From positions 2,522 to 66,521 of the forward strand of contig CBFFRP010000191.1 in NCBI GenBank assembly GCA_965644295.1: a DNA stretch of 64,000 bases, given 5' to 3'. Numbering within the stretch: position 1 is the first letter of the stretch; every line of letters starts with the position of its first letter. The notes below the pieces were generated by a model. The model saw only the letters and a list, made by a program, of their open reading frames with translations. It had not been told where the DNA came from and searched no databases. A program made the position numbers and the translations under genes. Below are positions 16,161 through 51,700 of this stretch, one piece after another. The DNA is from Paraphysomonas bandaiensis (taxonomy: Eukaryota; Protista; Chrysophyceae).

Positions 16161-16374
16161 GACGAATCCTAATAGCTGGCGATACATAAAAACTTGAAAG
16201 TAGGCTTTTTTTATTCTTCTACCGATATTTATGTACATAGGGGTATATATTTTGCACCCTACAGATAAGAATGATTTCGTAAAATACTATCATAATATTG
16301 ATTGCAATACGATTGTGAGCCACTTCTACAGAAACAATACTGATGGAATATTTGACCAGTCCACCAATCAATAT

Positions 16375-17256
16375 TGTAATAACCAGCTATCAGGTTATTC
16401 TATTCTACAAGCTCTCTATTGTATATGCTTAAGTTTGTACATACCATCTGTGCAAACATAGATTGAATAATATTATTATTATTATTACCATAACTCACAC
16501 TGAGATATATGATATATTATGACTATGACAATTCATGCTTATCATTGATATTTACATAATCATTCAAAAGACAAAGAAAGACATGATTATCAATAATGAG
16601 ACATAATGATGATACTGATGATGGATGATATATATATATGTTCTTATTATATATATATATTGACTTTAAGGCTGGAGAAGTTTACTGGAGAATTCCGGGT
16701 TTGATATCCATGCTGATAGATGTGTATTGCCAGATTATCCAGTAATACAGTTATACATTACGTATTTCCTTCAGTGCTTATTGGGGATTGATTGTACTTA
16801 GGAGTACGAATACCAGGCTTCAACTACAATGAGAATACTGAATGTATCTTCCCTTATACAGTTGTAATGAGTTATTATGATCAACTGTGTTAGACTGATG
16901 TGTTTGGTATTGAATATGAATGATGTTCATTCCATTGATCACGGAATCGTAGGTAGACATATTTATATTATTGATAATAAGATGCAATTTCCTTACTCTT
17001 GAAATTGCTGGTAGATAGCATTGTAGTTGTAGACACATATTTGTTCATTGTGATTTGATTATATTGTTATTATTATGGAGGAGGAGACTCTTGATAGCGC
17101 ACAAGAGTCTACTAAATTCGAGTCAGTGAGAAGGACCCTCAGGCTTATGCTTGGAGGGTTAGACCCTTCCATTGCCAATGCCAGTGAGGATCAAATCCGG
17201 GATATAGGCTTGGCATTTGGGTTGTCCGAGATCGAATCAGAGACGTTGGTGTCTCA
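16375..17256 (+). repeat. 5' LTR (882 bp); contains the gag ATG and first ~61 codons
   Basis: Constant offset of 9407 to the 3' copy; no difference seen by eye; internal ORF translations are identical in both copies. Confidence 0.9.
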
Positions 17257-20200
17257 ATTTTTTAAGGAAATTTCATCTCTCAATAAACAAAGTGACGACT
17301 TTAGAGAGACAGAAACTCATGAAGCAGACAGTCAAGCAACGACTGTTCCAGAACTGGTGGATCGTCTTAGTAGTCCGGAGGAGGTACCCTTGTCAGCCCG
17401 AAAACCTCTCGCATTCGGTAAGGACGCTATTCAACCATTGAGGGCTCAGGATGATTTTTGTTCGTTTGATGCAGATGCGACAGGAGATAGTCCATTACAT
17501 ATGGACCCCTTGCCATTCAAGGAACAAAGTAACAAGGAGGCTGAGGCAAAGGAGTGTCATTATACACCCTTACCTCACGCAGGGGATGAGGCACACAATG
17601 TGCTACATTCCACCTCTGGATTGCAAGGTGTATATAACACCAGCAGACCAGACCAACTAGGTAGAGATGCAGATAGGTGTCAAATCTGTCAGCGACTCAC
17701 AGATCCCAAGCGTCTCACCGCTGGAGGAATATGTTATTATTGCTCGGAAAATCAATGTATTGATTGTAAGGACCAGGTAAATTCAATGGAAATTCAGGGT
17801 GGTCTATGTTATCGATGCCGAGTAAGAAGGGGGATACTCAGATCAAAGAGACCCACCACAGACACTTTAGAGAAGTGCATAATATTGGGCCATAGAAGAT
17901 TGCGTCCTCGGCCAGACCTAAACGAGGACACATATATGGAGCATTTGTACCTGGATCGTGGGGCTAGAGACCCTATGGACCTAAAGATTTCTCTTGACAT
18001 CCTGCAACAGTACGCAGATCGACGGAGGGTGCATACCACCAGATGGTCAAAACAGCGATACACCGCTCATATAGCAGAGCCACTGCAGCATTGGGAGCAG
18101 CAGATTTACATGGCTTGTACAGCTACTGAGGTCACTGATCGTTTACAGGACCACTTTTTTGAGCAAATGAAAATAGCAAGAGAGAGTTCTGCGGAAGATA
18201 TTTCTCAGCTTGCCCAACTAGTCTTAAATCGAGGAAACGGCTTGCAATTACCATCAAATGTTCGCGAGTGGTTAAGTAGGCTGACAGTTCTTGACAATGT
18301 ACATGAGTTAGTGGCTGAAGAGCACATTTACGAAACAGCGGAATTGTGCATGGTGCTGAACCAATACCTTGATATAAGAGACATGGCTGAAACTATGTGG
18401 GAGGAGGCCGATAGCCAACTAATGATGCGCTGCAATCTCCTCAGCAAACAACTCAGTCAGCAAAATAAAAAATTTGGATCTTGGGAAGAGAGGACCGTTG
18501 ACTCTGACGATGAGTCATACCACTCCTTCGTCAGCAATGGTAGTCGGGGTTCCTTTGTCAGCAGAGGAAGTCGGTCAGCAGATACCAGATCAAGTACATC
18601 CCGAGTGTTGAGTTCTAGGGGTTCAAGATCGAATTCCCGTATTTATCCAACTGAAGATGGCAGACTGCTAGACGCACAAGCATTCGGGTGTCACCTTCAA
18701 CAAATTGGAGAGCAACACTGGTCACTGCTCTGTAACCAAATGCGATCGTCTAGAGCCATGCGGTTAATGTCTAAAGCATTGCCCAAAGCTACTCCATGGA
18801 GAAGAGAAGTCAAGGAGCCTACTCTCTACATGAAGACTGATGACAAGATGCGTCTAGAGAAAGATCAATCTAATCGATACCCCATTGAACGAGGACTCCG
18901 TTTTGCTGTCCAGAAGGCACGTCAGGCCAAGATGGGGCTGAAAGATCTGGTCATACAGACGAAGAATGGTTGGTGTTTTAAGGGCGGCTTTAAAGAGGAA
19001 CTGCAACGGTTGTCTTTGAATCGTGTGCCAGAGATATGGGATGACCAGGAGGATAGCCAATTAGCCACTGAATATGAATTTTGGATGCGTCGTTGGGTGC
19101 ATTTCTGCCATTGGGCTATCCGTAATTATTGTCCCGTACAGACCAATGAACAGCGTGCCAAACAGATTGAGGACTGGGCTGCTCCTGATCTCGCTACGCC
19201 TACAGCAGTTATGCAACTATATTATGAACTAAAAGAGGTAGTTGAACATAATACGCCGGATTGCCAGACGGCACAGGTGATGGAAGAATCGATGCGCCGA
19301 GTGGTAGGAAAAGAGCCTGTTTGGGGTAAATCGTTGGTTGCAGCGTACGACAATAAGATCACAAAAATTGAAAGGGCGAAGTCGACTGAAAATTGGAGTC
19401 TATCATGGGAGGAGGTAGAATCAATCTGGCGAGAGATTCAGGAAGAATTCCAGCAGGGAACGCTGCTATACATTATACGTCCTGATGTCCAATCTAGTAA
19501 ACAACCAGACACAACTAAGGGTGAGGGTGGCTTACGACGACATCACAAAGTTCATGCCGGCATACGCGAGGAACCCAAACCATCTCTCACACCGATTGAG
19601 ATTGCGAAGCTTACATGTTCACGATGTGGCCTTCGACATAGTATTAACAACGCTCAATGCCGGCGCATCACGAATGGGAAATTTGACCCACTTGGATTTG
19701 TGTCTGAGACACCACGTAACATTGAAAGGAATCGAATATACAATTTTTGGTTGTCCAGATTGAATAAGTATAGCCAACCTTGGTCTCAGTTGCCTACGGC
19801 TCAGAAGGAGGAATTTCAGGCAGCATTTCGGGATTTGACTAGCCGGTGGGATGGAGGGAGTGCTTTGCATACGACATTCATTGGTGGCGAACGGAAGAAA
19901 TCTAATTCCATAGCATCAAGTGTTTCTAGTACACCACAAGTACATTGGGCGGATAGTGATGATGACTCTTCTTTCTCTACACTGGATGACTCTATACCTG
20001 CTCACAGTACAGACTCACTTTCCGGTTCACGATCTACTAAGTCAAAATCAAAACCCAAACGAAAGGTTCATGCTGCACAAAAAGTTCGATACTTAGTGCA
20101 CACTGTGACACCTAGGGATGAATCTCAAGATACATTATCCATGTTTCGTGTTCTATATGATACAGTTGATGAAACTGGTAAACCAGTACAGAGAGTCGGT

Positions 20201-21145
20201 TGGCACCAGGTGGATCATGGCTCTATGGAGTCCTTGATCGACGAAGAGTGTGCAGCCCTCTTGAATCTTAAGCGAGTACGAATCCCAAAGAGAGACCGGT
20301 ACATTATTCGGGGAATAGGTTCACACGATATCGCTGTGAGTTGGAGAGCTTGTCTTACCTACACTGTTACTGCACAACGGGTCTTACCTGTGGCAGTGTT
20401 GCCGGGAGAGGCACCACTTTTGAACAATGCAAGGGAACAAGTTCAGTTGAAAGCATGGATACCAATTATCCCGAATTGTTCCATGAATGTAATCTTTGGA
20501 GGGCATGCATTACGACGTATCAAAATGATTGACTTGTTTGATCATAAACTGCTGTTGTTCCAAACTAATGGTATTCAGTATGCAATGCCTCAATTCAACT
20601 GGAATGAGACTGTTACGCAAATGGCATCAGCTCAGGACCCTGTGGTACAGAAATGTGTTGCACGCCATCTCCGTGAAAACAAACCTCAACCTCACAAGGC
20701 TGCAGTCTGCATATCGAAACATATCCCACCGCATTCTAAGATGCGGATTCCTGTTCAAGTGGGCAAGGGTGCTCCGTTAGGTGGATGGATACAGACTCTG
20801 CCAGAGGTTGCAAGGATTAATTCAGGTGATGATGCTAATGAGCCCGTCTTACAATTTGAAGATGCTATTTGTACGGCGAACAGACCTTATATATGGGCTT
20901 CTAATCATACCGATGATTGGATCCATCTACCGGGTAGACCGCGTTTAGTTGTACGACTTCAACCCATATTATTGGGGATGCAGGTTCATAATCAGGAGAC
21001 GGTGGAATCTGCTATGAATGGCAGTGTCGAGACGGAGGATACCGCTATCATGCCTACTGATGACAAATTCCAGCATTCAGATATTTCTATGTTATCTGAA
21101 GAGAATCACGAAAATGTCACTAGGCTGGTGTCCTCATCGAAATGA
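17075..21145 (+). CDS. gag: Gypsy ORF1: Gag-like region + aspartic protease + dUTPase-like spacer
   Basis: 1356 aa. N-terminal Cys cluster, CCHC-like knuckle CSRCGLRHSINNAQC, protease-like VDHGSMESLI...VIFGGHAL, and post-protease IPPHSKMRIPV...SNHTDDWIHLP spacer. Confidence 0.8.
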   Translation: MEEETLDSAQESTKFESVRRTLRLMLGGLDPSIANASEDQIRDIGLAFGLSEIESETLVSQFFKEISSLNKQSDDFRETETHEADSQATTVPELVDRLSSPEEVPLSARKPLAFGKDAIQPLRAQDDFCSFDADATGDSPLHMDPLPFKEQSNKEAEAKECHYTPLPHAGDEAHNVLHSTSGLQGVYNTSRPDQLGRDADRCQICQRLTDPKRLTAGGICYYCSENQCIDCKDQVNSMEIQGGLCYRCRVRRGILRSKRPTTDTLEKCIILGHRRLRPRPDLNEDTYMEHLYLDRGARDPMDLKISLDILQQYADRRRVHTTRWSKQRYTAHIAEPLQHWEQQIYMACTATEVTDRLQDHFFEQMKIARESSAEDISQLAQLVLNRGNGLQLPSNVREWLSRLTVLDNVHELVAEEHIYETAELCMVLNQYLDIRDMAETMWEEADSQLMMRCNLLSKQLSQQNKKFGSWEERTVDSDDESYHSFVSNGSRGSFVSRGSRSADTRSSTSRVLSSRGSRSNSRIYPTEDGRLLDAQAFGCHLQQIGEQHWSLLCNQMRSSRAMRLMSKALPKATPWRREVKEPTLYMKTDDKMRLEKDQSNRYPIERGLRFAVQKARQAKMGLKDLVIQTKNGWCFKGGFKEELQRLSLNRVPEIWDDQEDSQLATEYEFWMRRWVHFCHWAIRNYCPVQTNEQRAKQIEDWAAPDLATPTAVMQLYYELKEVVEHNTPDCQTAQVMEESMRRVVGKEPVWGKSLVAAYDNKITKIERAKSTENWSLSWEEVESIWREIQEEFQQGTLLYIIRPDVQSSKQPDTTKGEGGLRRHHKVHAGIREEPKPSLTPIEIAKLTCSRCGLRHSINNAQCRRITNGKFDPLGFVSETPRNIERNRIYNFWLSRLNKYSQPWSQLPTAQKEEFQAAFRDLTSRWDGGSALHTTFIGGERKKSNSIASSVSSTPQVHWADSDDDSSFSTLDDSIPAHSTDSLSGSRSTKSKSKPKRKVHAAQKVRYLVHTVTPRDESQDTLSMFRVLYDTVDETGKPVQRVGWHQVDHGSMESLIDEECAALLNLKRVRIPKRDRYIIRGIGSHDIAVSWRACLTYTVTAQRVLPVAVLPGEAPLLNNAREQVQLKAWIPIIPNCSMNVIFGGHALRRIKMIDLFDHKLLLFQTNGIQYAMPQFNWNETVTQMASAQDPVVQKCVARHLRENKPQPHKAAVCISKHIPPHSKMRIPVQVGKGAPLGGWIQTLPEVARINSGDDANEPVLQFEDAICTANRPYIWASNHTDDWIHLPGRPRLVVRLQPILLGMQVHNQETVESAMNGSVETEDTAIMPTDDKFQHSDISMLSEENHENVTRLVSSSK

Positions 21146-21160
21146 GTAGACGGCAAAGAG

Positions 21161-24100
21161 GTGAATCGGCCACCTCCGGAGCCACCGCCTGTTAACATAG
21201 CCGATACGACTTCGGATTGTCCACGACCGGAGTCAATCCCTGTGGAATTATGGAATTTAGTGGATTTGTGTCAGCGAAATTCAGTTCAACCACGATTTGA
21301 CAAGTACACTCCTGACCGTCTTCAAGAGTGTATTGAACTGATTTTAACTAAGCTGGATATATATAAGGATGATGAAGCAGTCTCGTTGCAAGGGGAGATT
21401 TCTATCGACGCGGATACTATAGCTTCACATCATAATGAACGTGATTATTTTTTGGCTCAAGCTTTGGCCAATATTGATGTTTTCTGTTTTCCTGATCCCG
21501 ATAACCCTCCACGGATTAAGGATTATAAAGTGAGTATTGAAACTACTGATGAAGTTCCGGTTCGGGCGCGACCTCGGAAATATTCTTTATTGCAACAAGC
21601 ATTTTTAGAGGCTAAAACTGGTATGATGCTTCGTCAGAAAAAGCTTCAACCCTCAAACAGTGATTGGAGCCATGGTTTAGTTCTGGTTCCTTATCATGAC
21701 CGTATTCAGAAATTTTTAGATAAATGGGGAGACACGGCACATTTAGAAATCTTCAAAAAGGTTAATTGGCCTGAAGTGGCCACATTTTTTCGGATGTGTT
21801 CAGATGTCCGATCGCTCAATCAGAAAACTAAGGTAGATATTTTTCCACTTCCCAGGATTGATGACTTGCTAGATAGCATTCCTGTGGGAACTGACCGGTT
21901 TTCAGCGGGCGATATTGCTGATGCATTTTTCTGTGTGGAGCTTGACGCTGATAGTCGATTTAAAACGGCATTCCGCACTCATAACGCTCATTTACAGTAT
22001 ACGGTGATGTTACAAGGCTGGGTCAATGCACCTTCACACTTTAGTAGAGTCATTGCCCAGACTTTTGAAGACATGGATCGGTTTCAAGTCTCTGCATACC
22101 TGGACGATGTGCTTAACCATACTGGGGGTTTTCGTGCACATTTCCTGACACAGCAGTCCATATACGATAGACTTCGAAATCGTCATCTTACATTTAAAAT
22201 TGAAAAGACTCATATTAATTATCGGGAGCTGCGGTTCCTTGGACATATTCTGTCCAGAAACGGCCGATGCCCTGATCCGAAGAAGGTTGAGGCGATTACA
22301 AATCTTGCAGACCCAGAGGACGTTACGGCTGTTCGATGTTTTTTAGGAAGTACTTCATTCTACCGTCAGTATATTCCTCAATACGCAGACGTTGCGTTGC
22401 CTCTGTATGACTTGACGAAGAAAAATGTCAACGTGAAGAAACTCTGGCGCCCAGAGATACACGGCCATGCCATGGAGAGGCTTAAAGAGGCGCTGCGGAA
22501 GGCTCCTGTGCTTCGTTACATTGATAATTCTAAACCGTTTGTCATTCACCTGGATGCTTCCAAGACAAAGCGTGGTATCGGTGGGGTTCTCATGCAGCAT
22601 GATGACGCAGGGCAGCTCCATCCGGTGGAATATTTCAGTCGTAAGTTAACTCCTGCTGAACGAAATTACTCGGCCACGGATTTGGAATGTAAGGCCCTCA
22701 GGGATGTTATTCTCCATTGGCATATTTATCTGAGTAGTGGTCGTAAATTTGAAGTCCACTCTGACCACAATTGCCTGAAATATATGGTCCATTCAGTGAC
22801 TGCAACACTTAATCCACGATTGCTGGGATACCTCATGGATCTTCAATCATATCGTTTTGCTTTACATTACAAAAAAGGGGTGGAAAATGTAGTTGCTGAT
22901 ATGTTAAGTCGCCTTTGGCAAATAGGGGATGTACCGCCAGCTACTAGGGAGGAGCTCTCCGATCATCTCGGGCCGGTGGTTGATAATGAGGATCCAGACC
23001 TCATCCGATCATGGGGGGCTGCAAAACGACAGTTGAGTAAATTGAAACGCCAAGCGGTTGTGGAGGCGCAAACTATTAAGAAAACTCATACTTGCTCTAG
23101 CAAATTTGAGGTTCAAATCTGTAATTGTGATGCGCTGGATTTGGATTTGTTGTCTTCTTTGACTAATGTCAAGAAAGGGGGAGTATTAGGGGAAAGTTCA
23201 GAATTAGAAAATTCTGAAGTTAGATTTAAAGTGGCTGGCTCTACATTAAAAAGAAGGAAGCAGCCGAGCATCGATGTAGAACAATATAGTTGCCAGGTTG
23301 AGAATCTACTTAAAGAATTGAATATTACGGAAGTTCAGGAAACTGGTGAGTCAAGGATGAAATTCAGCAATTCGGGACAGAATATACAACATGCAACTGC
23401 ACACTCGAACCGAACTAGCTTTCATCCATCTCGAACAAACTATATGGATAATCCAGATGAGTCAGAAGATATGAAGTTAATTCGAGAACGACGAATTTCT
23501 GGTTACAATCAATGTACTATTCTTCCATCGACAAAGCTAAAAGCAGGATGGGGACTTTTTGCCACCAAACAGATCTGTCCAAATGTTGAGATTTGTGATT
23601 ATGTGGGTCCGGTTGTATCTGAAGGAGTGGATCAATTAAGCTCCAATTATGGGATGCAGATGATTGCTGGAGCACATCGTAAGATTGTTTTTGATGGATG
23701 GGAACCTGGTTCAAGCTTAGGTCGATATGCGAATGATGGGATATCCAAACAATTGATTAATGCGAAATTGATATGGAAAAAATCTAAAGGAGTTTTGATG
23801 GCTCTTAGAGAGATCTTGCCTGGGGATGAAATATTTTTTGACTATGGTAAAGAATTTTGGAGTACTAGAAGTGATCAACTTAGTCCAGAAGATAATCAAA
23901 TTCTGAATTTAGATGGATCTCGACGGAAGACTACCGTGTCTTTTAAAGATGAATTTGAGTTAATTGTGTACGATCAAAAACGGAAAGTTCAGGAGAAACT
24001 ATATTCCAAAATCTTTAAGTACAGCGATGAAGAAAATTCCAGAATCCAGGAACTTGTTGAGATGGAGGAACGAAATACTAGGAATTTCGAGAGAACTCTC

Positions 24101-25726
24101 CGATATCTAGAAACCGACGCTTTGGAGAAGTACTCTTATGAGAACCTAGTACAATGCCAATCACTTGCTGACGAATTGCAATATCTGGTAGGCAGAAAGT
24201 ATATTGATGACGATAATTTCCAAAAATATGAGATTGCTTCAATACATTATGATGAAACGCATAAGTTAGTGGTTGGTCATAGGAGGCCTTTGTCAGGGAA
24301 ATTGGATAGATATGATACTCACCCATTCGCCGTATGTGGAGAATCTGGATTATGGGAGTTATCAGATCAATATTTATTAGATCATCCGGAAGTAGATCCG
24401 GAGATTAAGTGGCCTTCGAGTAGAGAGAGTATGTTTCAGATCCAAGAAAATGATACTCAACTGGGATTGATTATATCACAGTTATCAAATTTTGAAACTG
24501 GCCATGAGTTAGAAGTGGATGGTCATGATTACAAGTTACATGAGAATGCAGATGAACCATCGCACAAGATACTATTGAGAAAACATGTTCAGAAAAACAA
24601 GGGATCGATAGATTGGCAAATTATGGTCCCTCAGGTGTTACGTTTTCAACTAATGAAGTATTTCCATGAAGGATATACGCATCCAGGAACACAACGAATG
24701 CTTGAAACTTTGAAATTGAGATATTTTTGGCCGTCAATACGCAAGGATGTACAGAAACATGTGGAGGAATGTATACCTTGTAAATTACGTAAGACCTATC
24801 AAACGCGACCAAAGATTCCAATAATGAAATACCCTGATGCAAAATTTCCTTTGTCACGAATACATATTGATTTAACAGGAAGATTGGTGAAAACCAAAAG
24901 TGGTTTCAGTTATATTCTAGTGGTAAAGGATTTCCTTACTAAATTTGTTTGGCTTATGCCTCTTAAGAACAAGACGCCTTTGGAAGTGGCTAATGCTTTG
25001 ATTACTCATGTGTTTTGTCCATTTGGGTTACCAGAATTACTGGTGAGTGATAAAGGCACAGAGTTTGTCAATAAACTGACCAAAGCAATATCCAAGTTAT
25101 TCAAGTATAGAAGGATTAACACTACTCCTTATACTCCAAGGAGCCAGGGTTTAGTTAAGAATCACAACAAGACGTTGAAGGATCAGTTGTACCATTTTGT
25201 AGGTGTATTACAGGATGACTGGGATACATTTTTGCCTACAGTACAATTGATGTATAATACTACAGTGTCCTCGAGCACAAGTTTTACTCCATATTATATG
25301 ATGTTCGGTAGAGAATGCCGTTTACCATCTATAGAGTTTACATTGTCCTCGAAACTTTCCGAGCTTCGATTACAACCTGGAACTATTGAAGCTGAATGGA
25401 TAGATAATTTGTTGATTTCTTTGGAACAAGCTTGGAATTATGCAACGAAGAAAGCTCAAAAGAATCATCTCCGACATAATATGGTATCTAGGCGACCTCG
25501 AGAGTTCAAAGAATATAATGCTGGTGATTTATTCTTCAGAATTCGACGTCCAATTAATGTGTTTAAATCGGCTGATGATGAGGAGTTGTATAAAATCAAT
25601 GCCAAATTACAAGCTAGATTTGAAGGACCTTATAAAGTTATTCGGCGACTAAGTCCAATACTTTATGATGCTGAAATTGAAGGAAAAGAGGTTCGAATAA
25701 ATGCTACTAATATGAAGCCATTTTAG
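21161..25726 (+). CDS. pol: Gypsy ORF2 Pol: RT - RNase H - SET domain - novel domain - integrase (same frame as ORF1, one TGA between)
   Basis: RT FPLPRIDDLL and YLDD; RH LDAS, SDH, NVVADMLSR; SET GWGLFA/DYVG/RYAND/GDEIFFDYG; IN H-H-C-C, HIDL, SDKGTEF, FEGPY. Confidence 0.93.
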   Translation: MNRPPPEPPPVNIADTTSDCPRPESIPVELWNLVDLCQRNSVQPRFDKYTPDRLQECIELILTKLDIYKDDEAVSLQGEISIDADTIASHHNERDYFLAQALANIDVFCFPDPDNPPRIKDYKVSIETTDEVPVRARPRKYSLLQQAFLEAKTGMMLRQKKLQPSNSDWSHGLVLVPYHDRIQKFLDKWGDTAHLEIFKKVNWPEVATFFRMCSDVRSLNQKTKVDIFPLPRIDDLLDSIPVGTDRFSAGDIADAFFCVELDADSRFKTAFRTHNAHLQYTVMLQGWVNAPSHFSRVIAQTFEDMDRFQVSAYLDDVLNHTGGFRAHFLTQQSIYDRLRNRHLTFKIEKTHINYRELRFLGHILSRNGRCPDPKKVEAITNLADPEDVTAVRCFLGSTSFYRQYIPQYADVALPLYDLTKKNVNVKKLWRPEIHGHAMERLKEALRKAPVLRYIDNSKPFVIHLDASKTKRGIGGVLMQHDDAGQLHPVEYFSRKLTPAERNYSATDLECKALRDVILHWHIYLSSGRKFEVHSDHNCLKYMVHSVTATLNPRLLGYLMDLQSYRFALHYKKGVENVVADMLSRLWQIGDVPPATREELSDHLGPVVDNEDPDLIRSWGAAKRQLSKLKRQAVVEAQTIKKTHTCSSKFEVQICNCDALDLDLLSSLTNVKKGGVLGESSELENSEVRFKVAGSTLKRRKQPSIDVEQYSCQVENLLKELNITEVQETGESRMKFSNSGQNIQHATAHSNRTSFHPSRTNYMDNPDESEDMKLIRERRISGYNQCTILPSTKLKAGWGLFATKQICPNVEICDYVGPVVSEGVDQLSSNYGMQMIAGAHRKIVFDGWEPGSSLGRYANDGISKQLINAKLIWKKSKGVLMALREILPGDEIFFDYGKEFWSTRSDQLSPEDNQILNLDGSRRKTTVSFKDEFELIVYDQKRKVQEKLYSKIFKYSDEENSRIQELVEMEERNTRNFERTLRYLETDALEKYSYENLVQCQSLADELQYLVGRKYIDDDNFQKYEIASIHYDETHKLVVGHRRPLSGKLDRYDTHPFAVCGESGLWELSDQYLLDHPEVDPEIKWPSSRESMFQIQENDTQLGLIISQLSNFETGHELEVDGHDYKLHENADEPSHKILLRKHVQKNKGSIDWQIMVPQVLRFQLMKYFHEGYTHPGTQRMLETLKLRYFWPSIRKDVQKHVEECIPCKLRKTYQTRPKIPIMKYPDAKFPLSRIHIDLTGRLVKTKSGFSYILVVKDFLTKFVWLMPLKNKTPLEVANALITHVFCPFGLPELLVSDKGTEFVNKLTKAISKLFKYRRINTTPYTPRSQGLVKNHNKTLKDQLYHFVGVLQDDWDTFLPTVQLMYNTTVSSSTSFTPYYMMFGRECRLPSIEFTLSSKLSELRLQPGTIEAEWIDNLLISLEQAWNYATKKAQKNHLRHNMVSRRPREFKEYNAGDLFFRIRRPINVFKSADDEELYKINAKLQARFEGPYKVIRRLSPILYDAEIEGKEVRINATNMKPF

Positions 25727-25781
25727 GTTCGCAGTGAACTTCGTTCCGCATACTGGCGTATGCGACTGCTGGAGGGGGTAG

Positions 25782-26663
25782 TGTAATAACCAGCTATCAG
25801 GTTATTCTATTCTACAAGCTCTCTATTGTATATGCTTAAGTTTGTACATACCATCTGTGCAAACATAGATTGAATAATATTATTATTATTATTACCATAA
25901 CTCACACTGAGATATATGATATATTATGACTATGACAATTCATGCTTATCATTGATATTTACATAATCATTCAAAAGACAAAGAAAGACATGATTATCAA
26001 TAATGAGACATAATGATGATACTGATGATGGATGATATATATATATGTTCTTATTATATATATATATTGACTTTAAGGCTGGAGAAGTTTACTGGAGAAT
26101 TCCGGGTTTGATATCCATGCTGATAGATGTGTATTGCCAGATTATCCAGTAATACAGTTATACATTACGTATTTCCTTCAGTGCTTATTGGGGATTGATT
26201 GTACTTAGGAGTACGAATACCAGGCTTCAACTACAATGAGAATACTGAATGTATCTTCCCTTATACAGTTGTAATGAGTTATTATGATCAACTGTGTTAG
26301 ACTGATGTGTTTGGTATTGAATATGAATGATGTTCATTCCATTGATCACGGAATCGTAGGTAGACATATTTATATTATTGATAATAAGATGCAATTTCCT
26401 TACTCTTGAAATTGCTGGTAGATAGCATTGTAGTTGTAGACACATATTTGTTCATTGTGATTTGATTATATTGTTATTATTATGGAGGAGGAGACTCTTG
26501 ATAGCGCACAAGAGTCTACTAAATTCGAGTCAGTGAGAAGGACCCTCAGGCTTATGCTTGGAGGGTTAGACCCTTCCATTGCCAATGCCAGTGAGGATCA
26601 AATCCGGGATATAGGCTTGGCATTTGGGTTGTCCGAGATCGAATCAGAGACGTTGGTGTCTCA
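25782..26663 (+). repeat. 3' LTR (882 bp)
   Basis: Preceded by the PPT and followed by TSD ATAT. Confidence 0.9.
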
Positions 26664-27048
26664 ATATATTTTACATTATATTGTTCCCTAACCCTGACTG
26701 AAAGTATGTTCTTTGCATATGAGTTCGCTTCCCCTGTTTACATCAAACTCTATTCACTTGCACAATGTATATCCCATCAGACGGAAGAGCTCAGCACATA
26801 CATGTCCTTGGTGCTATTTACAAAATGAGAGTTTGCATGATAAACTCATAATAAAAGTTAATTTCATTTGGATAGTTTTGCCTCAAGAAAAAATCACCGA
26901 AATATAAAAACCAATTATTACTGCATATACACTTACTACAGCTGTTTGTTTTTTGTAGTTGCCTTCTAGGTGCCTTCACCCACATAGCACTTCTAAATCA
27001 TGTCCAATAACAGTGATTGAACAAGCACCAATGTATAAAGAAACTCCA

Positions 27049-30000
27049 CTACTCTACAGTGGCGTTTGTACAATATTGTTGATATAATAGACCATCTGCG
27101 AAGCATTGGTGAGCATGCACGTCCGGCCCCGCAATATCAAGCTCTTTAAGTGCTCGTATTAAAGGTAGAAGAAAAGCTGAGTTTCTTTCTAGGTCATCAG
27201 CATTTGCAGATACTTTAGTACTCTCTTCCTCTCTGACATGACTACCTGCTGGCACTTCTTCAGGTGGAGTGGCGTTGTCAACAACATCGTCAGCATCTGC
27301 CCCTTCTATATTTACCACATCCTCTACATTTTCCTCCTTACTATTCATAACGTCACCGTCACAAGCATGTTCAGATTGTTCTTGTATCCCAAGCTCATTG
27401 CAAATTTTTATGTTTTCTCTCTCCAATTTCATTAGAAGGGAATCGGTTTCTCCTTTGCAGAGTAACAGCCGCTCTATGACATCAGCCTTATTGGCAGAAA
27501 GCAATAAATTTAACACCGTGGTATCTTCTTGTAGCAACGCAGCTTCAACACATGTATCTCCATTATTGTCTTCGATCAATATATTTAACTCTTCTGCACA
27601 TTCAACGAAAACATTAACAGTATCGACATCGTTGCCATCAATGGCAAGGTGAAGAGCTGTTTTCCCCGATATGTCGTCCGTAACATTCGGGTCAACTTGA
27701 GGTATTGATAACGCTCGACGCATATAAGCAATATTTTTTGCTGACACTGCTCTGTGGAGTGGCCGATCAGGATATATCTTGACGGAGGCATTCAACAGCG
27801 AGCCATGAACTGGAGTTTTGGATGCTCGACTGACTACACCTTGCACAATATCATCAGACACATTTGATAATCCCGCAACGTAATGTGCGTACGGAAATTT
27901 ATATATTGTGACACCTTTCTCCCATATAATATCAACTAATTTAGCATAATTGCTAACAATCGCAACATGAAGAATTGTAAATATCTTCGGAAGGTCCAAC
28001 TTCAGTATTGCTACCTCACAAGTATAATCACAACTAAAACTTTCATCTGCAAAACACTTTCGGAAACAGGGTAACACCAATTCAAATATCGAGTCCAACG
28101 AAACGTCCTTATTTCTGGAAGCACTAGCAAAAAAAAGAGCAGTTGCAACAGCAGGATTTATCTTTTCATTGCAATCTACATTCCGAATCAAATCATAAAA
28201 GTCCCCATCGTACATGTCACATAAAAATTTAAAAAACTCAAATCTCCTCTCTGGAGTAGAGGTAGGAATCTCAGTGAGACACCTATGCTGTGGTGCCGTG
28301 TCTAGTACATCACCACATAGACATAATGTAGCAGGACTGATCCCATCATCGGACCGCAGCATGAGGATATCAGCCAACGTCATTCGGATATATTTTACGG
28401 AAGACGGACAAAGTGCATTTGCCATTGCATTATCCAAGACCCGCCGCGCATCAATATCGTACTTTTCTTCCCTGGTTTTACCTGTCCGCACATCGGAATA
28501 TTCCATTCGTTGTTTCGGTCTGCGCACAGAGTGGTCAACAAGCGACTGACCAACTTCAACACAGTTTTCAGGACAAGTTGCAGCGAGGTAATGCAATGGA
28601 CTGAATCCCTTGTTGTCTAATGCATTAGCCACAGCGCCAAGCTTCAAAGCTGACATGACAGCCATTTTATCACCCAACCCAGCCAATACATGCAAAGCGG
28701 TAACACCATTTTTATTCGGGGAATTAATAGGCGCCCCAGCTGCAACTAAGCGCTCAATAGTTTCCACCGGAGTTCTTCCTTCTTTCGCCTGGACATTGCT
28801 CTTTATGGTAGCAACAACACCACCAATGGAATATACGATGCACCCCAATCCGATAGAATAGTGTAACGGATAGTTTCCACATTCAGAATCACTAACATTC
28901 AAATCCACACCAGCAGCAATCAAACTCTGAATAAAGAATTCTCCACCAGAGAGATCTATCCTGTCCGTGTGATTTTCAGCATTACACATTTGAAACATGA
29001 ACGATCTATCTTCAGGACTCAGTGAAAAGAAAGCGTATTTGATAGATGGGTTTCCTTCCATATCTAGCTGGTCAATATATACACCGGCAGCTACAAGCGC
29101 AGCTGCAACTTCTTCATTTCCAAGTATAAGACAATGGTCTAACGGTGTGACGCCCATGCTATCCCCTCTATTAATATCAGCACCAACCGCGATCAACGCA
29201 ATGGCCAGTGCCGTATGCCCTCCTTGAATACACGCCGTTAGTGGCTGCGCACGCAGCGCTTTCGAATGCAAATCATCACAAGATGTGTTTATAAATGCAG
29301 ACCACGTTGATGTATCTGGACCATGATTAGGGTCACTATGCGTCAAGTCTGGTTCAAATGGCAATGACAATTCGTCTTCAACTCCCTTCTTTTTCCCGTC
29401 TTTTCCTTTATCTTTTCCACCAGATGTGGGTTTCTTGGCTTTCAATTTTTGTGTTTCATCAGGTATGTCAACATTTTTCTGCTTTGCTATGTCATTCCAA
29501 TATTTTTCTCGTACCATTCCTCTGTTGAATATGTACATCAAGACATCTTGGCCCCACTGTACATCTCCAAGTGGACCAAATCGCCCCATACTACCTCCGA
29601 TAATAACAGCACCTCCAAGACTTAAAACACATGCACTAAATATATCAACAACTGCGGGCTGAATCACGTCTGATACTGTTGGTACCCTACTCAAACCTGA
29701 TACTGCAGAAAGCGCAATTGTCATAGTTGGCTTACGGGTGGTTGGGTTTGCAAGAACTCCAAGAATTGCACCAGCAACTGCTATAAAAGGCCAATACTCT
29801 TTCATATAGAGAATTTTATATGCATTTGTCACTGTTTTGCCATGTAATTTATCCAGGTTACATAGAGTCGGAAAATCCCATGAAAAAGGCGCATCAATGG
29901 CTTCAGGTGATATGCTATCATTATCAATTGGTTGCAGCGGAAGGACCTTGTGCGACAAAAAATCCTTCATGTGAATCATTGCAGGAACAAAAGATTTATC

Positions 30001-32733
30001 AGCACTATCATCGTTAGCGAACCCATACTGCGCAATTGCCTTGTAAAATATATCCAATCCTCGTACACCAGCACTGGCCATTGAAGCCAAAAGCCGAAGC
30101 GCAGCGTTGCAAACTGGTTCAGATAGATTATGTGACAGAGGACACGCAAGAATGTTGTCGTCTTCTAATTTCAGTGATGAACAACAGGATACTGTGGCAA
30201 CGCAAGGGTTTGCACACAATCTTATCACACGGGCTGCCTCATCAGCACATGAACAGGAAGAACTCGGAAAAGGTGTGAGTGGTTGCTGTGGAAGCTCTCC
30301 ATCCCCATAGTCTCTATATTTCGCATCAGAGGCAGCAACAACAGCTAAAATATCGAAAGAAATTTCTCGAAGTATAATCTTATCAACTGGTTCAGCTTCT
30401 TGCTCCATGGACCAGCTGAAATCCCGAGGATCCTGAATTGTCACGTGAAACTCCGTCATTGATGCCTCATTCTCGTCAAGATATTTTCCGCAGACAGGAC
30501 CACATCGATATAATAACCCAGCAAATGCGGTCACTTGATCTTCTGTAGCAAACACAGAAATGTAGCTTGGAGATACATCGAGAAGATACTCAATACAACA
30601 CAATATATGACACAGAGAATCACATGGTTGCAGTGGATCCATTTTAAGAATTAGCGAGTCAGATGGCTCGTCGATTACTTCAGGTGCCGATAATCCCTCA
30701 AGCTCAGAATCTTTTACTTCTTCCGCGCCCTCTAGTGGTTCACAATTTTCTACGGGATCTATCGTGGACAGCTCTTCCCGGATTTCAGCTTTCGTCACAA
30801 ATTCCTTAGTTGCAGATAATACAGAACTGTCAACGCAGTTCGCAGCCGCAACAGCACGCTTCACGCTAACAAGTGAAAGGTTCGCCAACGCTGTACTATC
30901 CACTTGCTGAGATTGGAGAAACGAAACAATATCTTCATCAGCACAGCTTTGCATAATGATATTTAACAATCGGGCTCCACGATTACTCAGATCTACATCT
31001 GCGTGTTTGATGAAGTCTACAATGAGAGAAATGTTGGTAGCTTGGGTTGCTTCATTAGAAACTTCTAGATTCGACGCTAAGGCACGCAAATCTAGCTTGT
31101 AATTCTTGTACGACTGACATCGCATTGAACACCTTGATTCAAGTCTATCACTACAGATTTTCGGACTGGATATATTTTCCCCACTTTGTGTGTTTCCATC
31201 GCTCCCTTCTATGTCAGTATCACAAACAACTCTGTCGGTCAGAAGATGCAGCAGCGCTTTTTCAATAACGTGACGAAGCGCGTACAGTACCTCTAATTTT
31301 TCTGGAGGTATGATTATATCACCACGAGGAGAATCTTCTTTACCTTTCTTCGTAGGTGGTTCAGGTTTCTCTATACCGGCAACAAGTGTCGAGTTTGACA
31401 TAAGATTGAGTAAAAATCGCACTGCTCCTTTTTCTGCAGCACAGATACGAATATCTTCCGATATTAAACCATAGCATCCCATCAACATGCTGACATCACG
31501 TATAAAATTCGAAACATCTGGATCAGGACGAGAAGGCTGGACATCTTCACATGCAGCCCATACATGTGGGTTTTGAGCAACAGCGATAACTGCTTCCATC
31601 ACACGACTCACAGAATCCGTTGACACAGAAGCTTTCGCATTCTGTGCCAGCGCAACACATATCATAACAGCAGTTCGTACGAGAGAAATATCTCTATAGG
31701 CATTGCTGCGTGGACTATTCACCTGTTCCTGTGCCTTAACAGAGCCTTTGGTATCCTTGCCCTTACCAGTAGGCGCCTTTCCTTGGATAGGGTCGGAGAC
31801 AATTCTTTCTGAAGCCTCTTCCAAGACTGACAACACTAGCTCAATGTATTCCTGAGTCGAAATTATTTGAAGACCGGCAGGCTGTGTGGATAAATACTCA
31901 AACAACAGCATGCAGTGTAAACTTAATCGCTCTTCTCGACATAACTTCTGAGCCAATTCCAAAACTCCATCAACCGAAAGAAACACGGAAATTGAATCGC
32001 TACCATATCTTAATACAACCAACAATATCTGCATTACCCATACACATGCGTCGATGATTCTTTCTTTTGTTTCTTCGTTGTCGAGTCGAGCAGACAAGTA
32101 CTTCAGTGCTCTACACGAGGTTAATACAATATCTGGAATAGAAGCAAAGGCTGTTGCAATATCATGATTTCTTGGCTCCATATTATACACAGCATACGCA
32201 AAGAGTGACATGCCTTGTATTGCATAAAATCGAAGAGATTCACCTAAAATCTCCTCTGGGGTTGGCTCGGAATTCTTCTTTTTCTTTTTCTTGACTTCCT
32301 CTTCGTACATCATTATTTCAGACAAGTTCTGAAGGACATTAAGAGACCCTGATGATGAAAATAGAGCCTCTGTCCCATGTAGGCACAATTTTAATCCGGT
32401 AGAATCTTTCTTGTTCAGGAATGTCAACAGAGATTCAAGAGTAAGTTTACATAACTGCAGGGTTTTCTATCATAACAAATAAATAAATTATGGAATGTAC
32501 ATCCGCACCATTATATATACCTTCTTAGGAACCAATGACTCGAGTAAAGGGGTAAGGCAACCGCCTTCGAGTAGATACCTTTCATCTTTTATTTTCTCCA
32601 ACGCATGATTCTTTTTTGCTGGGTCTTTCGTTTTAACCTCCTTAGCAGTCGTCTTGAACTCTTTTGCGCGCTGCTTCGCAGTTAGAGCGTCTAAATCCAC
32701 GATAGCAGTATCCCCACTATCCATTTTAATCAC
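27049..32733 (-). CDS. Large ARM-like helical + ankyrin-repeat protein (2 exons, intron ~32467-32520)
   Basis: 1792-aa ORF plus an upstream exon. Ankyrin motifs GADINRGDSMGVTPLDH, NKNGVTALHVLA, DNKGFSPLHY, GKTALHLAIDG. Confidence 0.85.
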
Positions 32734-48739: not shown

Positions 48740-51700
48740 ATGTCGTCGAAATTCGTGGCGACATATCCAACGACGACTCGGAGGAAGAGGTACCACGAAA
48801 GCTCACGAGCAGGGACAGTAGTACTGTTCATGAAGATGCTGATCAAGGGAACAGGGCTACAGCGACATCATTTATCTAAGACTACCAAAAAGAAGTGTGA
48901 GACCAGTTTGTGCAAGTGGTGTGCTAAGGCGAAGATCACTAGGCATGCATTTCGAGGACAAAGTGACCAGAATGTGGAGATGAAGGCGACAGCATTCCTG
49001 GAGCGTATTACAGTGAATATTTCGGTTTATATGAATTGTCCATCTGTGGAGGGGTATAAGTACGCACTTGTATTTGTAGATACGGCTACGAAAGAATTCT
49101 GGGAATACGGTCTACGAACGAGAACTGGGGATGAAGTGTTAAAATGCGTGAAGCATCTCTGTGAAGTCAGGCTACCAAAATACCCAGGGTGGAACAGGAT
49201 ACAGCAGTACCATGCTGATGGTGGACCAGAGTTGATGGACAGGCGAATTAAAGAATACTTGTTACAAAAATTTGGAACCACATTCTCCTACACTACTAGG
49301 GAGACACCAGAATTAAACGGTGTTTCAGAACGGAAATTCAGGACACTAGGAGAAATGACATTATCACTTTTATTGTCATCGGGTATGCCAAAAGCAGAGT
49401 GGTGGAAAGCCTTTAGACATGCATGCTGGGTTCTTAGGAGATTACCCACAAAGACCTATAGAGGTTGGATGTCACCCTACGAGTGTGTTCCTGGAGGAAC
49501 GGTGCCAGATTTTTCTTGGTTACGGAAATGGGGGTGCAAGGCGTACGTTCTCATCCCGAAGGCAGATCGCAGGAAAGACTGGGAAGAAAAGGCACAGACT
49601 GGATACTTTGTAGGGTTCCCAGAGGAGCAAATGGGATACCAAGTATTGATTGGAGATACTATAGTTACGTCTGTGCATGTTTTATTCGATGAATCTGTGC
49701 CTGAGAGATCGGCGGATTATTATCGAGAAATGGACGAGGCCATGGTTGCTGTGGATCCTCAGGAAAGAAATATTAGAGACTTCGATTACTTAATCGGAAA
49801 GACCCATGAAGATGGCGGCCACCTATACAAGACCACACGAATATTGGTTCGAAAAGGTTTGATTGTAGGGTATAGATCCCTATTGTCTGGTGGTGCGGAG
49901 CAAGTGGAAGATAAGACTCCTATTCACATCGCCGATATACAGCGGATGAGTGAAGACCTTGCAACAAGAGTATCTGCAAGTTCTGGATCTCGTGACGACG
50001 GGACCAGCGGACATTTATCACAGCAGTTGACTGGGACGGTTCCATCCCCTTCTGACTTCGTAAGTGCTCCGGGAGAGGAAGCTCCATCAGATCGCTCATC
50101 AAGGGGCAGGCGTGCAAGGGCTCCAAGGGTGGTGACGAATGTGTCAGTTTTGGGTGAGATGCATTTATTGTCGTCATGTGTCGAAGACGAGTGCAGCCTA
50201 TTACAGGAGGCAGATTCCATCTGGTGCTCGTCAGCGGGACCTAAGGTGCCTCAGACATATTCCGAATCCTTGGAGTTGCCGGAACGGAAGCAATGGAGTT
50301 CAGCAAGACAAGCTGAACGTGACGGTTTAGAACGTAGGGGAGTCATGGAAGTTAAGCCCATCCCTACCGGGGTCACTCCATTGAAATCTAAGTATGTTTT
50401 CGCCTTGAAACGCAACAAAGAGGGTGCGATTCAACGATATAAGGCAAGACTTGTGGTACTTGGATGCGGAGACCATGAAGGTGGCAGAGCCAACAATTAT
50501 GCTCCAGTGGTAAAAGCGGTAACAGTGAGATTGCTTTTAGCAATCGCTTTTGTTATGAATATGGTGGTGCATCAACTCGACGTATCTAATGCATTTTTGT
50601 ATGCAGATATACAAGGAGATGTGTATATGTATGCTACACCAGATTTTAAATTGCCACCAGGACACTGCTTTAAACTGAAGAAAAGTTTATATGGTCTTCG
50701 AAGCTCACCACGGTCATGGTATAAATGTCTTAATAAGTTTATTAAGTCCTTGCATTTTATATCATGTATACTTGACCCATGTTTATATTTTACACGGATC
50801 AGGGGTGAATTAGTTCTGTTAGTAATATATGTAGATGATATGCTGATAGCATGTCGAGATACGAGTATTATTTTGGAAATTAAGCGACGAGTATGTGAAA
50901 GGTTCGATATTACAGATATGAATGAGATTGGCCAGTTTTTGAACGTGAGAGTGACGAGAACTCAGAATTGTCTCAAACTTGACCAAACAGTGTACATCAA
51001 AAAGATATTGGCGAAGTATATGGATTTTCTGGGTCCAAGGGACAAGACTCGGCGATACCCACTACCTAGTGATGTCATGGATAGGATCAAAGTGGGAGTG
51101 GAACATGTGCATTCGACTGAAGAGCAGGAATTAGTTGACAATTTTCCCTATCGTCCACTAATAGGAGCGTTACTTTATTTATCTATGAATACAAGGCCGG
51201 ATATATCATATGCAGTGGGAGTATTGTCACGATTCTCAACGAAAGTGAATATCACTGTATGTAAACTAATGATACATTTAATGCAGTATGTACGAGGTAC
51301 TACGGAAAAAGGCATTCAATATAGAGGGAAAGATTTTGATCTTCATATGTTCACGGATGCTGACTGGGCGGGTGACCCGTTGACGAGGAGATCAACTTCA
51401 GGTTATGTTATGTTTGGAGCTGGTGGACCACTATCGTGGGGTTCCAAACTTCAGTCTACTGTAGCTACATCGACTATGCAAGCAGAGTATCAATGCTTAT
51501 ATAATGGATTACAGGAAATGATATGGTCTCGGGGGGTGACTGGTGAAGTAGGATTGAAAATTGACGAGCCCACACCATTATTCCTGGATAGTCAAAGTGC
51601 TCAGGATATATCGGAAAATCCAGTGCAACATCAACGATCGAAACATATTGAGATTAAGTATCATATGATTAGAGAGCATGTGGATCCCGAACAGTTTAAT

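Follow-up and report, generated by a model that had tools for sequence, protein, structure and literature searches.

The window, a 64,000-nucleotide stretch of contig CBFFRP010000191.1 from the chrysophyte Paraphysomonas bandaiensis, carries on its plus strand an LTR retrotransposon with a SET domain inside Pol. Its two 882-bp LTRs (5′ LTR, 16375..17256; 3′ LTR, 25782..26663) begin with TG, end with CA and show 0 mismatches over their full length, and the same four bases, ATAT, flank the element on the 5′ side (16371..16374) and on the 3′ side (26664..26667) as a target-site duplication. A polypurine tract, GGAGGGGG (25771..25778), lies 3 bases 5′ of the 3′ LTR, and no canonical tRNA primer-binding site was recognised after the 5′ LTR. 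The LTR termini, the duplication and the polypurine tract, together with the order RVT_1, RT_RNaseH, Integrase_H2C2 and rve in Pol and a protease-like region upstream in ORF1, identify the element as Ty3/Gypsy. The insertion is intergenic, near the 3′ end of a gene; a 1792-aa intron-free ORF on the minus strand (27049-32427), with apparent ankyrin repeats when read by eye, stops some 380 bases away from the 3′ LTR.

ORF1 (17075..21145, plus strand), a Gag-protease frame of 1356 aa in the ORF list, has no Pfam match. Its protease-like region (approximately aa 1018-1185) was located by alignment to the DSG region of a metagenomic relative, P0017; the active-site triplet is DSG in that relative, whereas in the window element it reads DHG (20213-20221, plus strand). 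ORF1 has its first ATG within the 5′ LTR, 182 bases short of the LTR end, and the first 61 codons are repeated in the 3′ LTR. Read directly, the junction shows ORF1 ending in a TGA (21143-21145) that is in frame with Pol, and all intact copies have this arrangement of one shared frame with a single TGA between its two parts. Because 7 copies agree in the length of the open frame downstream of the TGA, 1526 aa, we regard the split as a trait of the family and not a lesion of the window copy, and it suggests stop-codon readthrough between Gag-protease and Pol.

The Pol ORF (21161..25726, plus strand; 1521 aa) encodes, in this order, reverse transcriptase (RT), RNase H, a linker, the SET domain, a second linker, a conserved middle domain and integrase. 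RT (aa 210-364) and RNase H (aa 434-564) occupy 21788..22852 and are matched by the Pfam families RVT_1 (1.3e-18), RT_RNaseH (1e-27) and RT_RNaseH_2 (3.7e-28). They are followed by a fast-evolving linker that is mostly unalignable between families (approximately aa 565-784; 22853..23512), by the SET domain with its C-flanking helix (aa 785-922; 23513..23926; assigned from Pfam and PDB profile matches, the predicted fold, conserved catalytic columns and sister-family dN/dS), by a linker predicted to be disordered (aa 923-954; 23927..24022; pLDDT below 50 at model residues 149-179) and by the middle domain (aa 955-1150; 24023..24610; pLDDT 80-96). The integrase (24626..25669) comprises an HHCC zinc finger (aa 1156-1212; Integrase_H2C2, 1.5e-16), a catalytic core (aa 1230-1326; rve, 8.7e-9) and a weak C-terminal SH3-like part (aa 1477-1503), for which the SH3_Tf2-1 match (0.0023) is below cut-off; all of these features are on the plus strand. 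A Pfam scan of Pol found no Chromo match at E up to 0.1, so that the integrase C-terminus has only the weak SH3_Tf2-1 match in place of the chromodomain that defines chromoviruses.

The SET domain and its predicted fold

The original prediction had placed a minimal SET domain in a Ty3/Gypsy Pol, between RNase H and integrase, with the SET signature motifs in order in an uninterrupted frame and no Cys-rich post-SET region, and had proposed that HMM and fold comparison would recognise it. The Pfam domain order along the 1521-aa ORF agrees with this placement, and positions 23513-23860 (348 bases) form a stop-free stretch of the Pol ORF with the motifs in the predicted order. Pfam SET aligns to aa 796-896 (23546-23848, plus strand) with 30.0 bits in the whole Pol, above the cut-off of 22.4, and with 33.6 bits (E 5.4e-8) in an isolated 183-aa segment, and PDB profiles match the domain as well. 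Its architecture is minimal, with neither the pre-SET nor the post-SET zinc clusters.

An earlier structure prediction from a 4-sequence alignment was unusable (pLDDT 43) and was replaced by an AlphaFold2 model of Pol aa 775-1150 built on an alignment of 118 sequences, which has a mean pLDDT of 84.9 and an uncertain inter-domain arrangement (pTM 0.44). Model residues 1-148 match solved SET domains, PRDM9 with a Foldseek E of 7e-8 and an rmsd of 2.3 Å, and further fold matches were to the PR domains of PRDM3 and PRDM12 and to G9a, SET8 and SET7/9. The predicted model has the SET beta-fold with its C-terminal pseudoknot region, and after the catalytic Tyr it places a helix where a zinc post-SET would be, as in SET7/9 and SET8. 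The domain is thus recognised by HMM as well as by predicted fold.

The residues GxG, Y814, Y830, R855, N858, E890, Y895 and W900 are kept in the 15 element SETs and in nearly all of the 118 relatives, with exceptions at N858, which is Gln in 5 of the 15. GxG, Y814, Y830, Y895 and W900 hardly vary among lineages that share less than 50% identity, and EHMT2 has the Tyr of its ICEYVGE motif at the position aligned to Y814. In nearly all 118 relatives, Asp stands where the classical NH motif has His, so that the motif reads ND. Together, the ND motif and the Gln substitutions resemble, in sequence, the pattern of PR-type SET domains; many PR domains are weak or inactive enzymes, but PRDM9 is active. 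The window copy has no PRDM2_PR match and none of the zinc-finger arrays of the PR/SET (PRDM) subfamily, and its SET domain is PR-like only in motif and fold. Judging from these sequence features, methyltransferase activity is likely.

These substitutions also bear on a different reading, in which SET would be a non-catalytic module that grips a histone tail or lysine peptide and tethers the integration complex, in a chromodomain-like role. Such a module would suit a lineage that lacks a chromodomain at the integrase C-terminus, as well as the loss of the NH His to Asp, the change of Asn to Gln in five members and the general weakness of many PR domains as enzymes. However, what is nearly invariant here extends beyond peptide-binding positions to the catalytic and SAM-binding residues, and we consider a purely binding role distinctly unlikely. 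A co-fold of SET with SAM and residues 1-45 of host histone H3 scored 0.01, which is evidence neither way, and reading a product specificity or target lysine from the sequence was rejected as unsafe.

In the same predicted model, the middle domain consists of a long helix and then a beta/alpha module that ends 5 residues before the integrase zinc finger. This domain is 31-39% identical across families, its divergence tracks that of integrase closely (rho 0.76), and a genome-wide search found it confined to the SET-bearing Gypsy lineage in this genome. It has no Pfam or Atlas match, and searches with the two-domain model, where SET dominates the matches, returned no structural assignment for it. 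We infer that it is an N-terminal extension of integrase. Elsewhere in the window, positions 49778-49891 show a non-significant resemblance to the middle domain (E 3.3).

Copies, sister families and selection

Across the 62.6 Mb of genome searched (669 contigs), we found 9 copies of the element at different loci, 95-100% identical in the SET region, 7 of which have the full open Pol frame. Target duplications were checked in five copies including that in the window, and all five have their own, the four further full copies being flanked by perfect 4-bp duplications of TTTT, AATA, AGTC and CAAA. Since the LTRs are identical and each checked copy has its own target duplication, the family was recently active. 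A 2739-bp contig from independent runs of the same organism spans 22187-24925 unbroken, with no joints seen, and the same element occurs on 2 metagenome contigs. We therefore give almost no credence to the architecture being an artefact of assembly or annotation, for example through contig chimerism or through insertion of an element into a host SET gene, which is contradicted by the single uninterrupted ORF, by nine copies at different loci, five of them with their own duplications, and by the same contiguity in independent runs and metagenome contigs. In RNA, the window family is represented only by a few short contigs, covering 24277-24569 and 24953-25269, from a single poly(A) metatranscriptome; the runs that contain the element are probably DNA.

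A second family lies on contigs C476, C661, C339 and C463, with a related one on C654; both are about 36% identical to the window element in SET and have the same order of RT, RNase H, SET and integrase. The family-2 SET is matched more strongly than that of the window copy (51 bits, E 1.7e-13) and also matches PRDM2_PR with 31.5 bits against a cut-off of 27. With a further diverged member on C656, this genome has at least two to three diverged SET-bearing families that share the order. Family-2 copies are 98% identical to Paraphysomonas transcripts of MMETSP1103, and hence this family is transcribed. When elements are ranked by integrase similarity, those 43-50% identical to the window element are the SET-bearing families, and the next Gypsy families are at 25-29%; two of these were read and have the spacing typical of Gypsy, 45-60 aa, and no SET between RNase H and the integrase zinc finger, so that the SET lineage is marked by an insert of about 590 aa. 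A search for related RT-RH-SET-IN elements, which the original prediction had proposed, thus found SET in all copies, in the diverged families and in elements of other organisms (see below), and every intact lineage member found has it.

Two decayed relatives were also seen. At G000:C297:799961-803016 (L027), an internal deletion has removed the SET-containing middle of Pol, and at G000:C133:272000-273600 (L057), a copy with many stops retains only the middle domain and integrase. Their presence indicates that the lineage has been resident in the genome for some time; as decayed or truncated copies, they were rejected as SET-less sisters for dating the capture.

Selection, which the original prediction had suggested measuring as dN/dS across copies, was tested in a pair of family-2 copies with a dS of about 0.2, and it proved purifying. 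dN/dS is 0.06 for SET (18 synonymous and 4 non-synonymous changes), 0.04 for the middle domain and 0-0.02 for RT, RNase H and integrase, and it rises to 0.39 in the linker after SET. In family 1, the family of the window element, SET has 6 synonymous vs 4 non-synonymous changes, the latter conservative, RT, RNase H and integrase together have 20 vs 2, and the linkers are near 1:1, the one between RNase H and SET having 15 vs 16. Between families, SET is 34-40% identical vs 51-58% for RT/RNase H or integrase, and the linker before SET is unalignable between most families. SET is under purifying selection.

Relatives in other organisms and origin

A profile of 4 element SETs was scored exhaustively against 1.84 billion cluster representatives and gave 8435 SET matches, 22 of them below 1e-30. 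Finding the relatives required this exhaustive profile search, as a word-indexed protein search over the SET region returned only one near-identical metagenome protein. Among the best matches, at least 15 clusters, mutually less than 50% identical, link SET to RT/RNase H, integrase or the middle domain, and one protein, P0019, is collinear with the window Pol over RT/RNase H, SET and integrase at 41-51% identity. The sources of these relatives are mostly marine and other metagenomes; one cluster contains a Symbiodinium microadriaticum protein (CAE7285478.1), and another contains Paraphysomonas transcripts from MMETSP1103.

In a tree of 140 SET domains made by a quick method, all 15 element-linked SETs fall in one 32-row clade (SH-aLRT 89), the remaining rows of which are mostly short fragments, with one 5-member subclade from contigs without RT or integrase. 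Pairwise divergence of SET correlates with that of integrase (Spearman 0.47, Mantel p 0.002). This sequence co-divergence fits a single capture followed by vertical co-inheritance, though it is not proof of it. Outside the elements, the closest SETs come from metagenome contigs on which no genes were recognisable, and with respect to the donor (host, bacterial or giant-virus), the predicted model matches SETs of giant viruses about as well as cellular ones.

Five metagenomic SET proteins of non-element type group inside the element SET clade or next to it, and two of their contigs, L029 (encoding P0063) and L030 (encoding P0032), carry same-strand ORFs with no Pfam matches. These proteins may be donors, parts of other mobile elements or large-virus genes.

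Retrotransposons do capture host fragments, and SET is less conserved here than RT and integrase, as might be expected if the domain were a neutral passenger, a fragment of a host or viral gene captured recently and without a role. This account is contradicted by the SET dN/dS of 0.06, and SET moreover keeps the same position and order in families 30-40% identical and in other organisms, retains its catalytic residues and co-diverges with integrase. We regard it as highly improbable.

Possible roles and known systems

Chromodomains and PHD fingers allow retroelements to read chromatin, and retroelements of a few algae carry DNA methyltransferases; the lineage described here may write protein or chromatin marks itself. 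In the reading that we favour, and consider fairly probable, the domain is a genuine SET protein-lysine methyltransferase module, integral to and inherited in the Pol of an active Ty3/Gypsy lineage, and active through SAM, most likely on a histone tail at the insertion. The parts of the element stand in the order Gag-PR, in-frame TGA, RT, RNase H, linker, SET, flexible linker, middle domain and integrase, and SET, co-translated with integrase, would methylate a lysine using SAM, to the benefit of element replication. Because SET would be translated with integrase, and only some 30 disordered residues and a helix lie between it and the middle domain, its site of action would most likely be the pre-integration complex or the target chromatin, where it may methylate histone tails around the new insertion. 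As the original prediction proposed, SET may stay fused to the integrase N-terminus after proteolytic processing and act on histones or host defence proteins at the integration site. Points against this reading are the ND in place of NH, the Gln for Asn in 5 element SETs, the faster evolution of SET than of RT and integrase, the restriction of RNA evidence for the window family to a few short contigs and the uncertain inter-domain arrangement of the model.

SET could instead be active on a non-histone substrate, either a protein of the element (integrase, Gag or RT) or a host restriction or silencing factor. SET7/9, SMYD and SETD6 methylate non-histone substrates, and SET7/9 is among the fold matches of the element domain. 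However, nothing points to any particular substrate of this kind, the other close matches (PRDM9, SET8, G9a, MLL and EZH2) are histone enzymes, and the location beside integrase fits target chromatin, so that we think a non-histone substrate rather unlikely. A more far-reaching form of the histone reading is that one widespread SET-Gypsy lineage of marine SAR protists (chrysophytes and dinoflagellates) delivers a histone lysine methyltransferase of its own to the nucleus, together with integrase, and writes a specific mark at integration-site nucleosomes. We put this forward only tentatively, as a possibility on the doubtful side; if true, a mobile element would set the chromatin state of its own new copies, beyond reading host marks.

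A selected histone-type lysine methyltransferase in an active LTR Pol would extend the retroelement repertoire to writing protein marks, and it opens the question of whether mobile elements evade or attract silencing by altering histone marks. As a young multi-copy family with intact ORFs and known empty-site junctions, the element offers a testable system, for which Gypsy families without SET, such as the C111 and C168 types of this genome, provide controls. For annotation, SET/PRDM-like gene models in protist, dinoflagellate and metagenome data may in part be fragments of retroelement Pol, and such misannotation would bias the numbers of chromatin enzymes that comparative studies arrive at.

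It is established that Gypsy integrases can carry chromodomains and that retrotransposons can carry DNA methyltransferases (DNMTs; PMC5890265), and the chromodomain steers integration to H3K9me chromatin (Gao et al. 2008, as cited in Grau-Bove et al. 2022). Chromoviruses such as MAGGY and Tf1 are likewise Ty3/Gypsy elements with a chromatin-related domain physically tied to integrase, but theirs is a reader at the integrase C-terminus, whereas the window element has a writer-type SET fold N-terminal of integrase and no chromodomain. The DNMT retrotransposons of Symbiodinium and Klebsormidium (de Mendoza et al. 2018, PMC5890265, in which SET domains are unmentioned) have likewise captured and kept an epigenetic writer, and dinoflagellate hosts are common to them and to the SET-bearing Gypsy elements; they encode C5 cytosine DNA methyltransferases, in contrast to the protein-lysine methyltransferase fold in the Gypsy Pol.

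Several known proteins share aspects of this architecture. SET7/9, SET8 (KMT5A), the PR domain of PRDM9 and giant-virus SETs have the same fold, no pre-SET or post-SET zinc clusters and a C-flanking helix, and such minimal SET enzymes share with the window SET a PR-like RYxN motif without His, but they are only 18-26% identical to it; PRDM proteins have zinc-finger arrays, whereas the element has none and its SET is embedded in a retroelement polyprotein. SETMAR and other SET-transposon fusions likewise combine SET and transposon domains on one polypeptide, but SETMAR is a host gene with a captured mariner transposase and is not mobile, unlike the window element. The survey of Grau-Bove et al. 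2022 (bioRxiv 10.1101/2021.11.30.470311) covers 823 TE-fusion gene models, lists SET as one of the chromatin domains in them and discusses only SETMAR; among the listed rows of its supplementary table, none has the RH-SET-IN architecture, and there is a Symbiodinium ‘SET RVT_1 DnaJ’ model.

The original prediction had held that no characterised LTR retrotransposon was known to encode a lysine methyltransferase. The open-access full-text literature yielded no description of an RH-SET-IN Gypsy lineage or of SET in any LTR element, but the statement needs qualifying for retrotransposons at large: besides the SET-transposon fusion models counted in the survey, a SET methyltransferase domain forms part of the 5287-aa protein of a cryptophyte LINE of the Dualen type, Dualen-1_GCr (Lescot et al. 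2016, PMC5029228). Compared by description only, Dualen-1_GCr is likewise a marine-protist retrotransposon polyprotein with SET, and the only described SET retroelement that we found in the open-access literature. It is a non-LTR element with, in this order, SET, a C48 peptidase, an apurinic-type endonuclease (APE), RT, RNase H, a CCHC zinc finger and a restriction-like endonuclease and without integrase, whereas the window element has LTRs and carries SET between RNase H and integrase. An apurinic-type endonuclease is also present in some relatives of the window element: an Exo_endo_phos domain occurs in several SET-bearing metagenome Gypsy relatives (P0017, P0020 and P0048; locus L055:6206-9751), and the window element itself is without one. 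To our knowledge, an APE domain and an integrase together in an LTR-type Pol are unusual. In P0017 and P0020, the endonuclease lies in the same ORF, upstream of RT, giving P0017 the order PR-APE-RT-RH-SET-IN.
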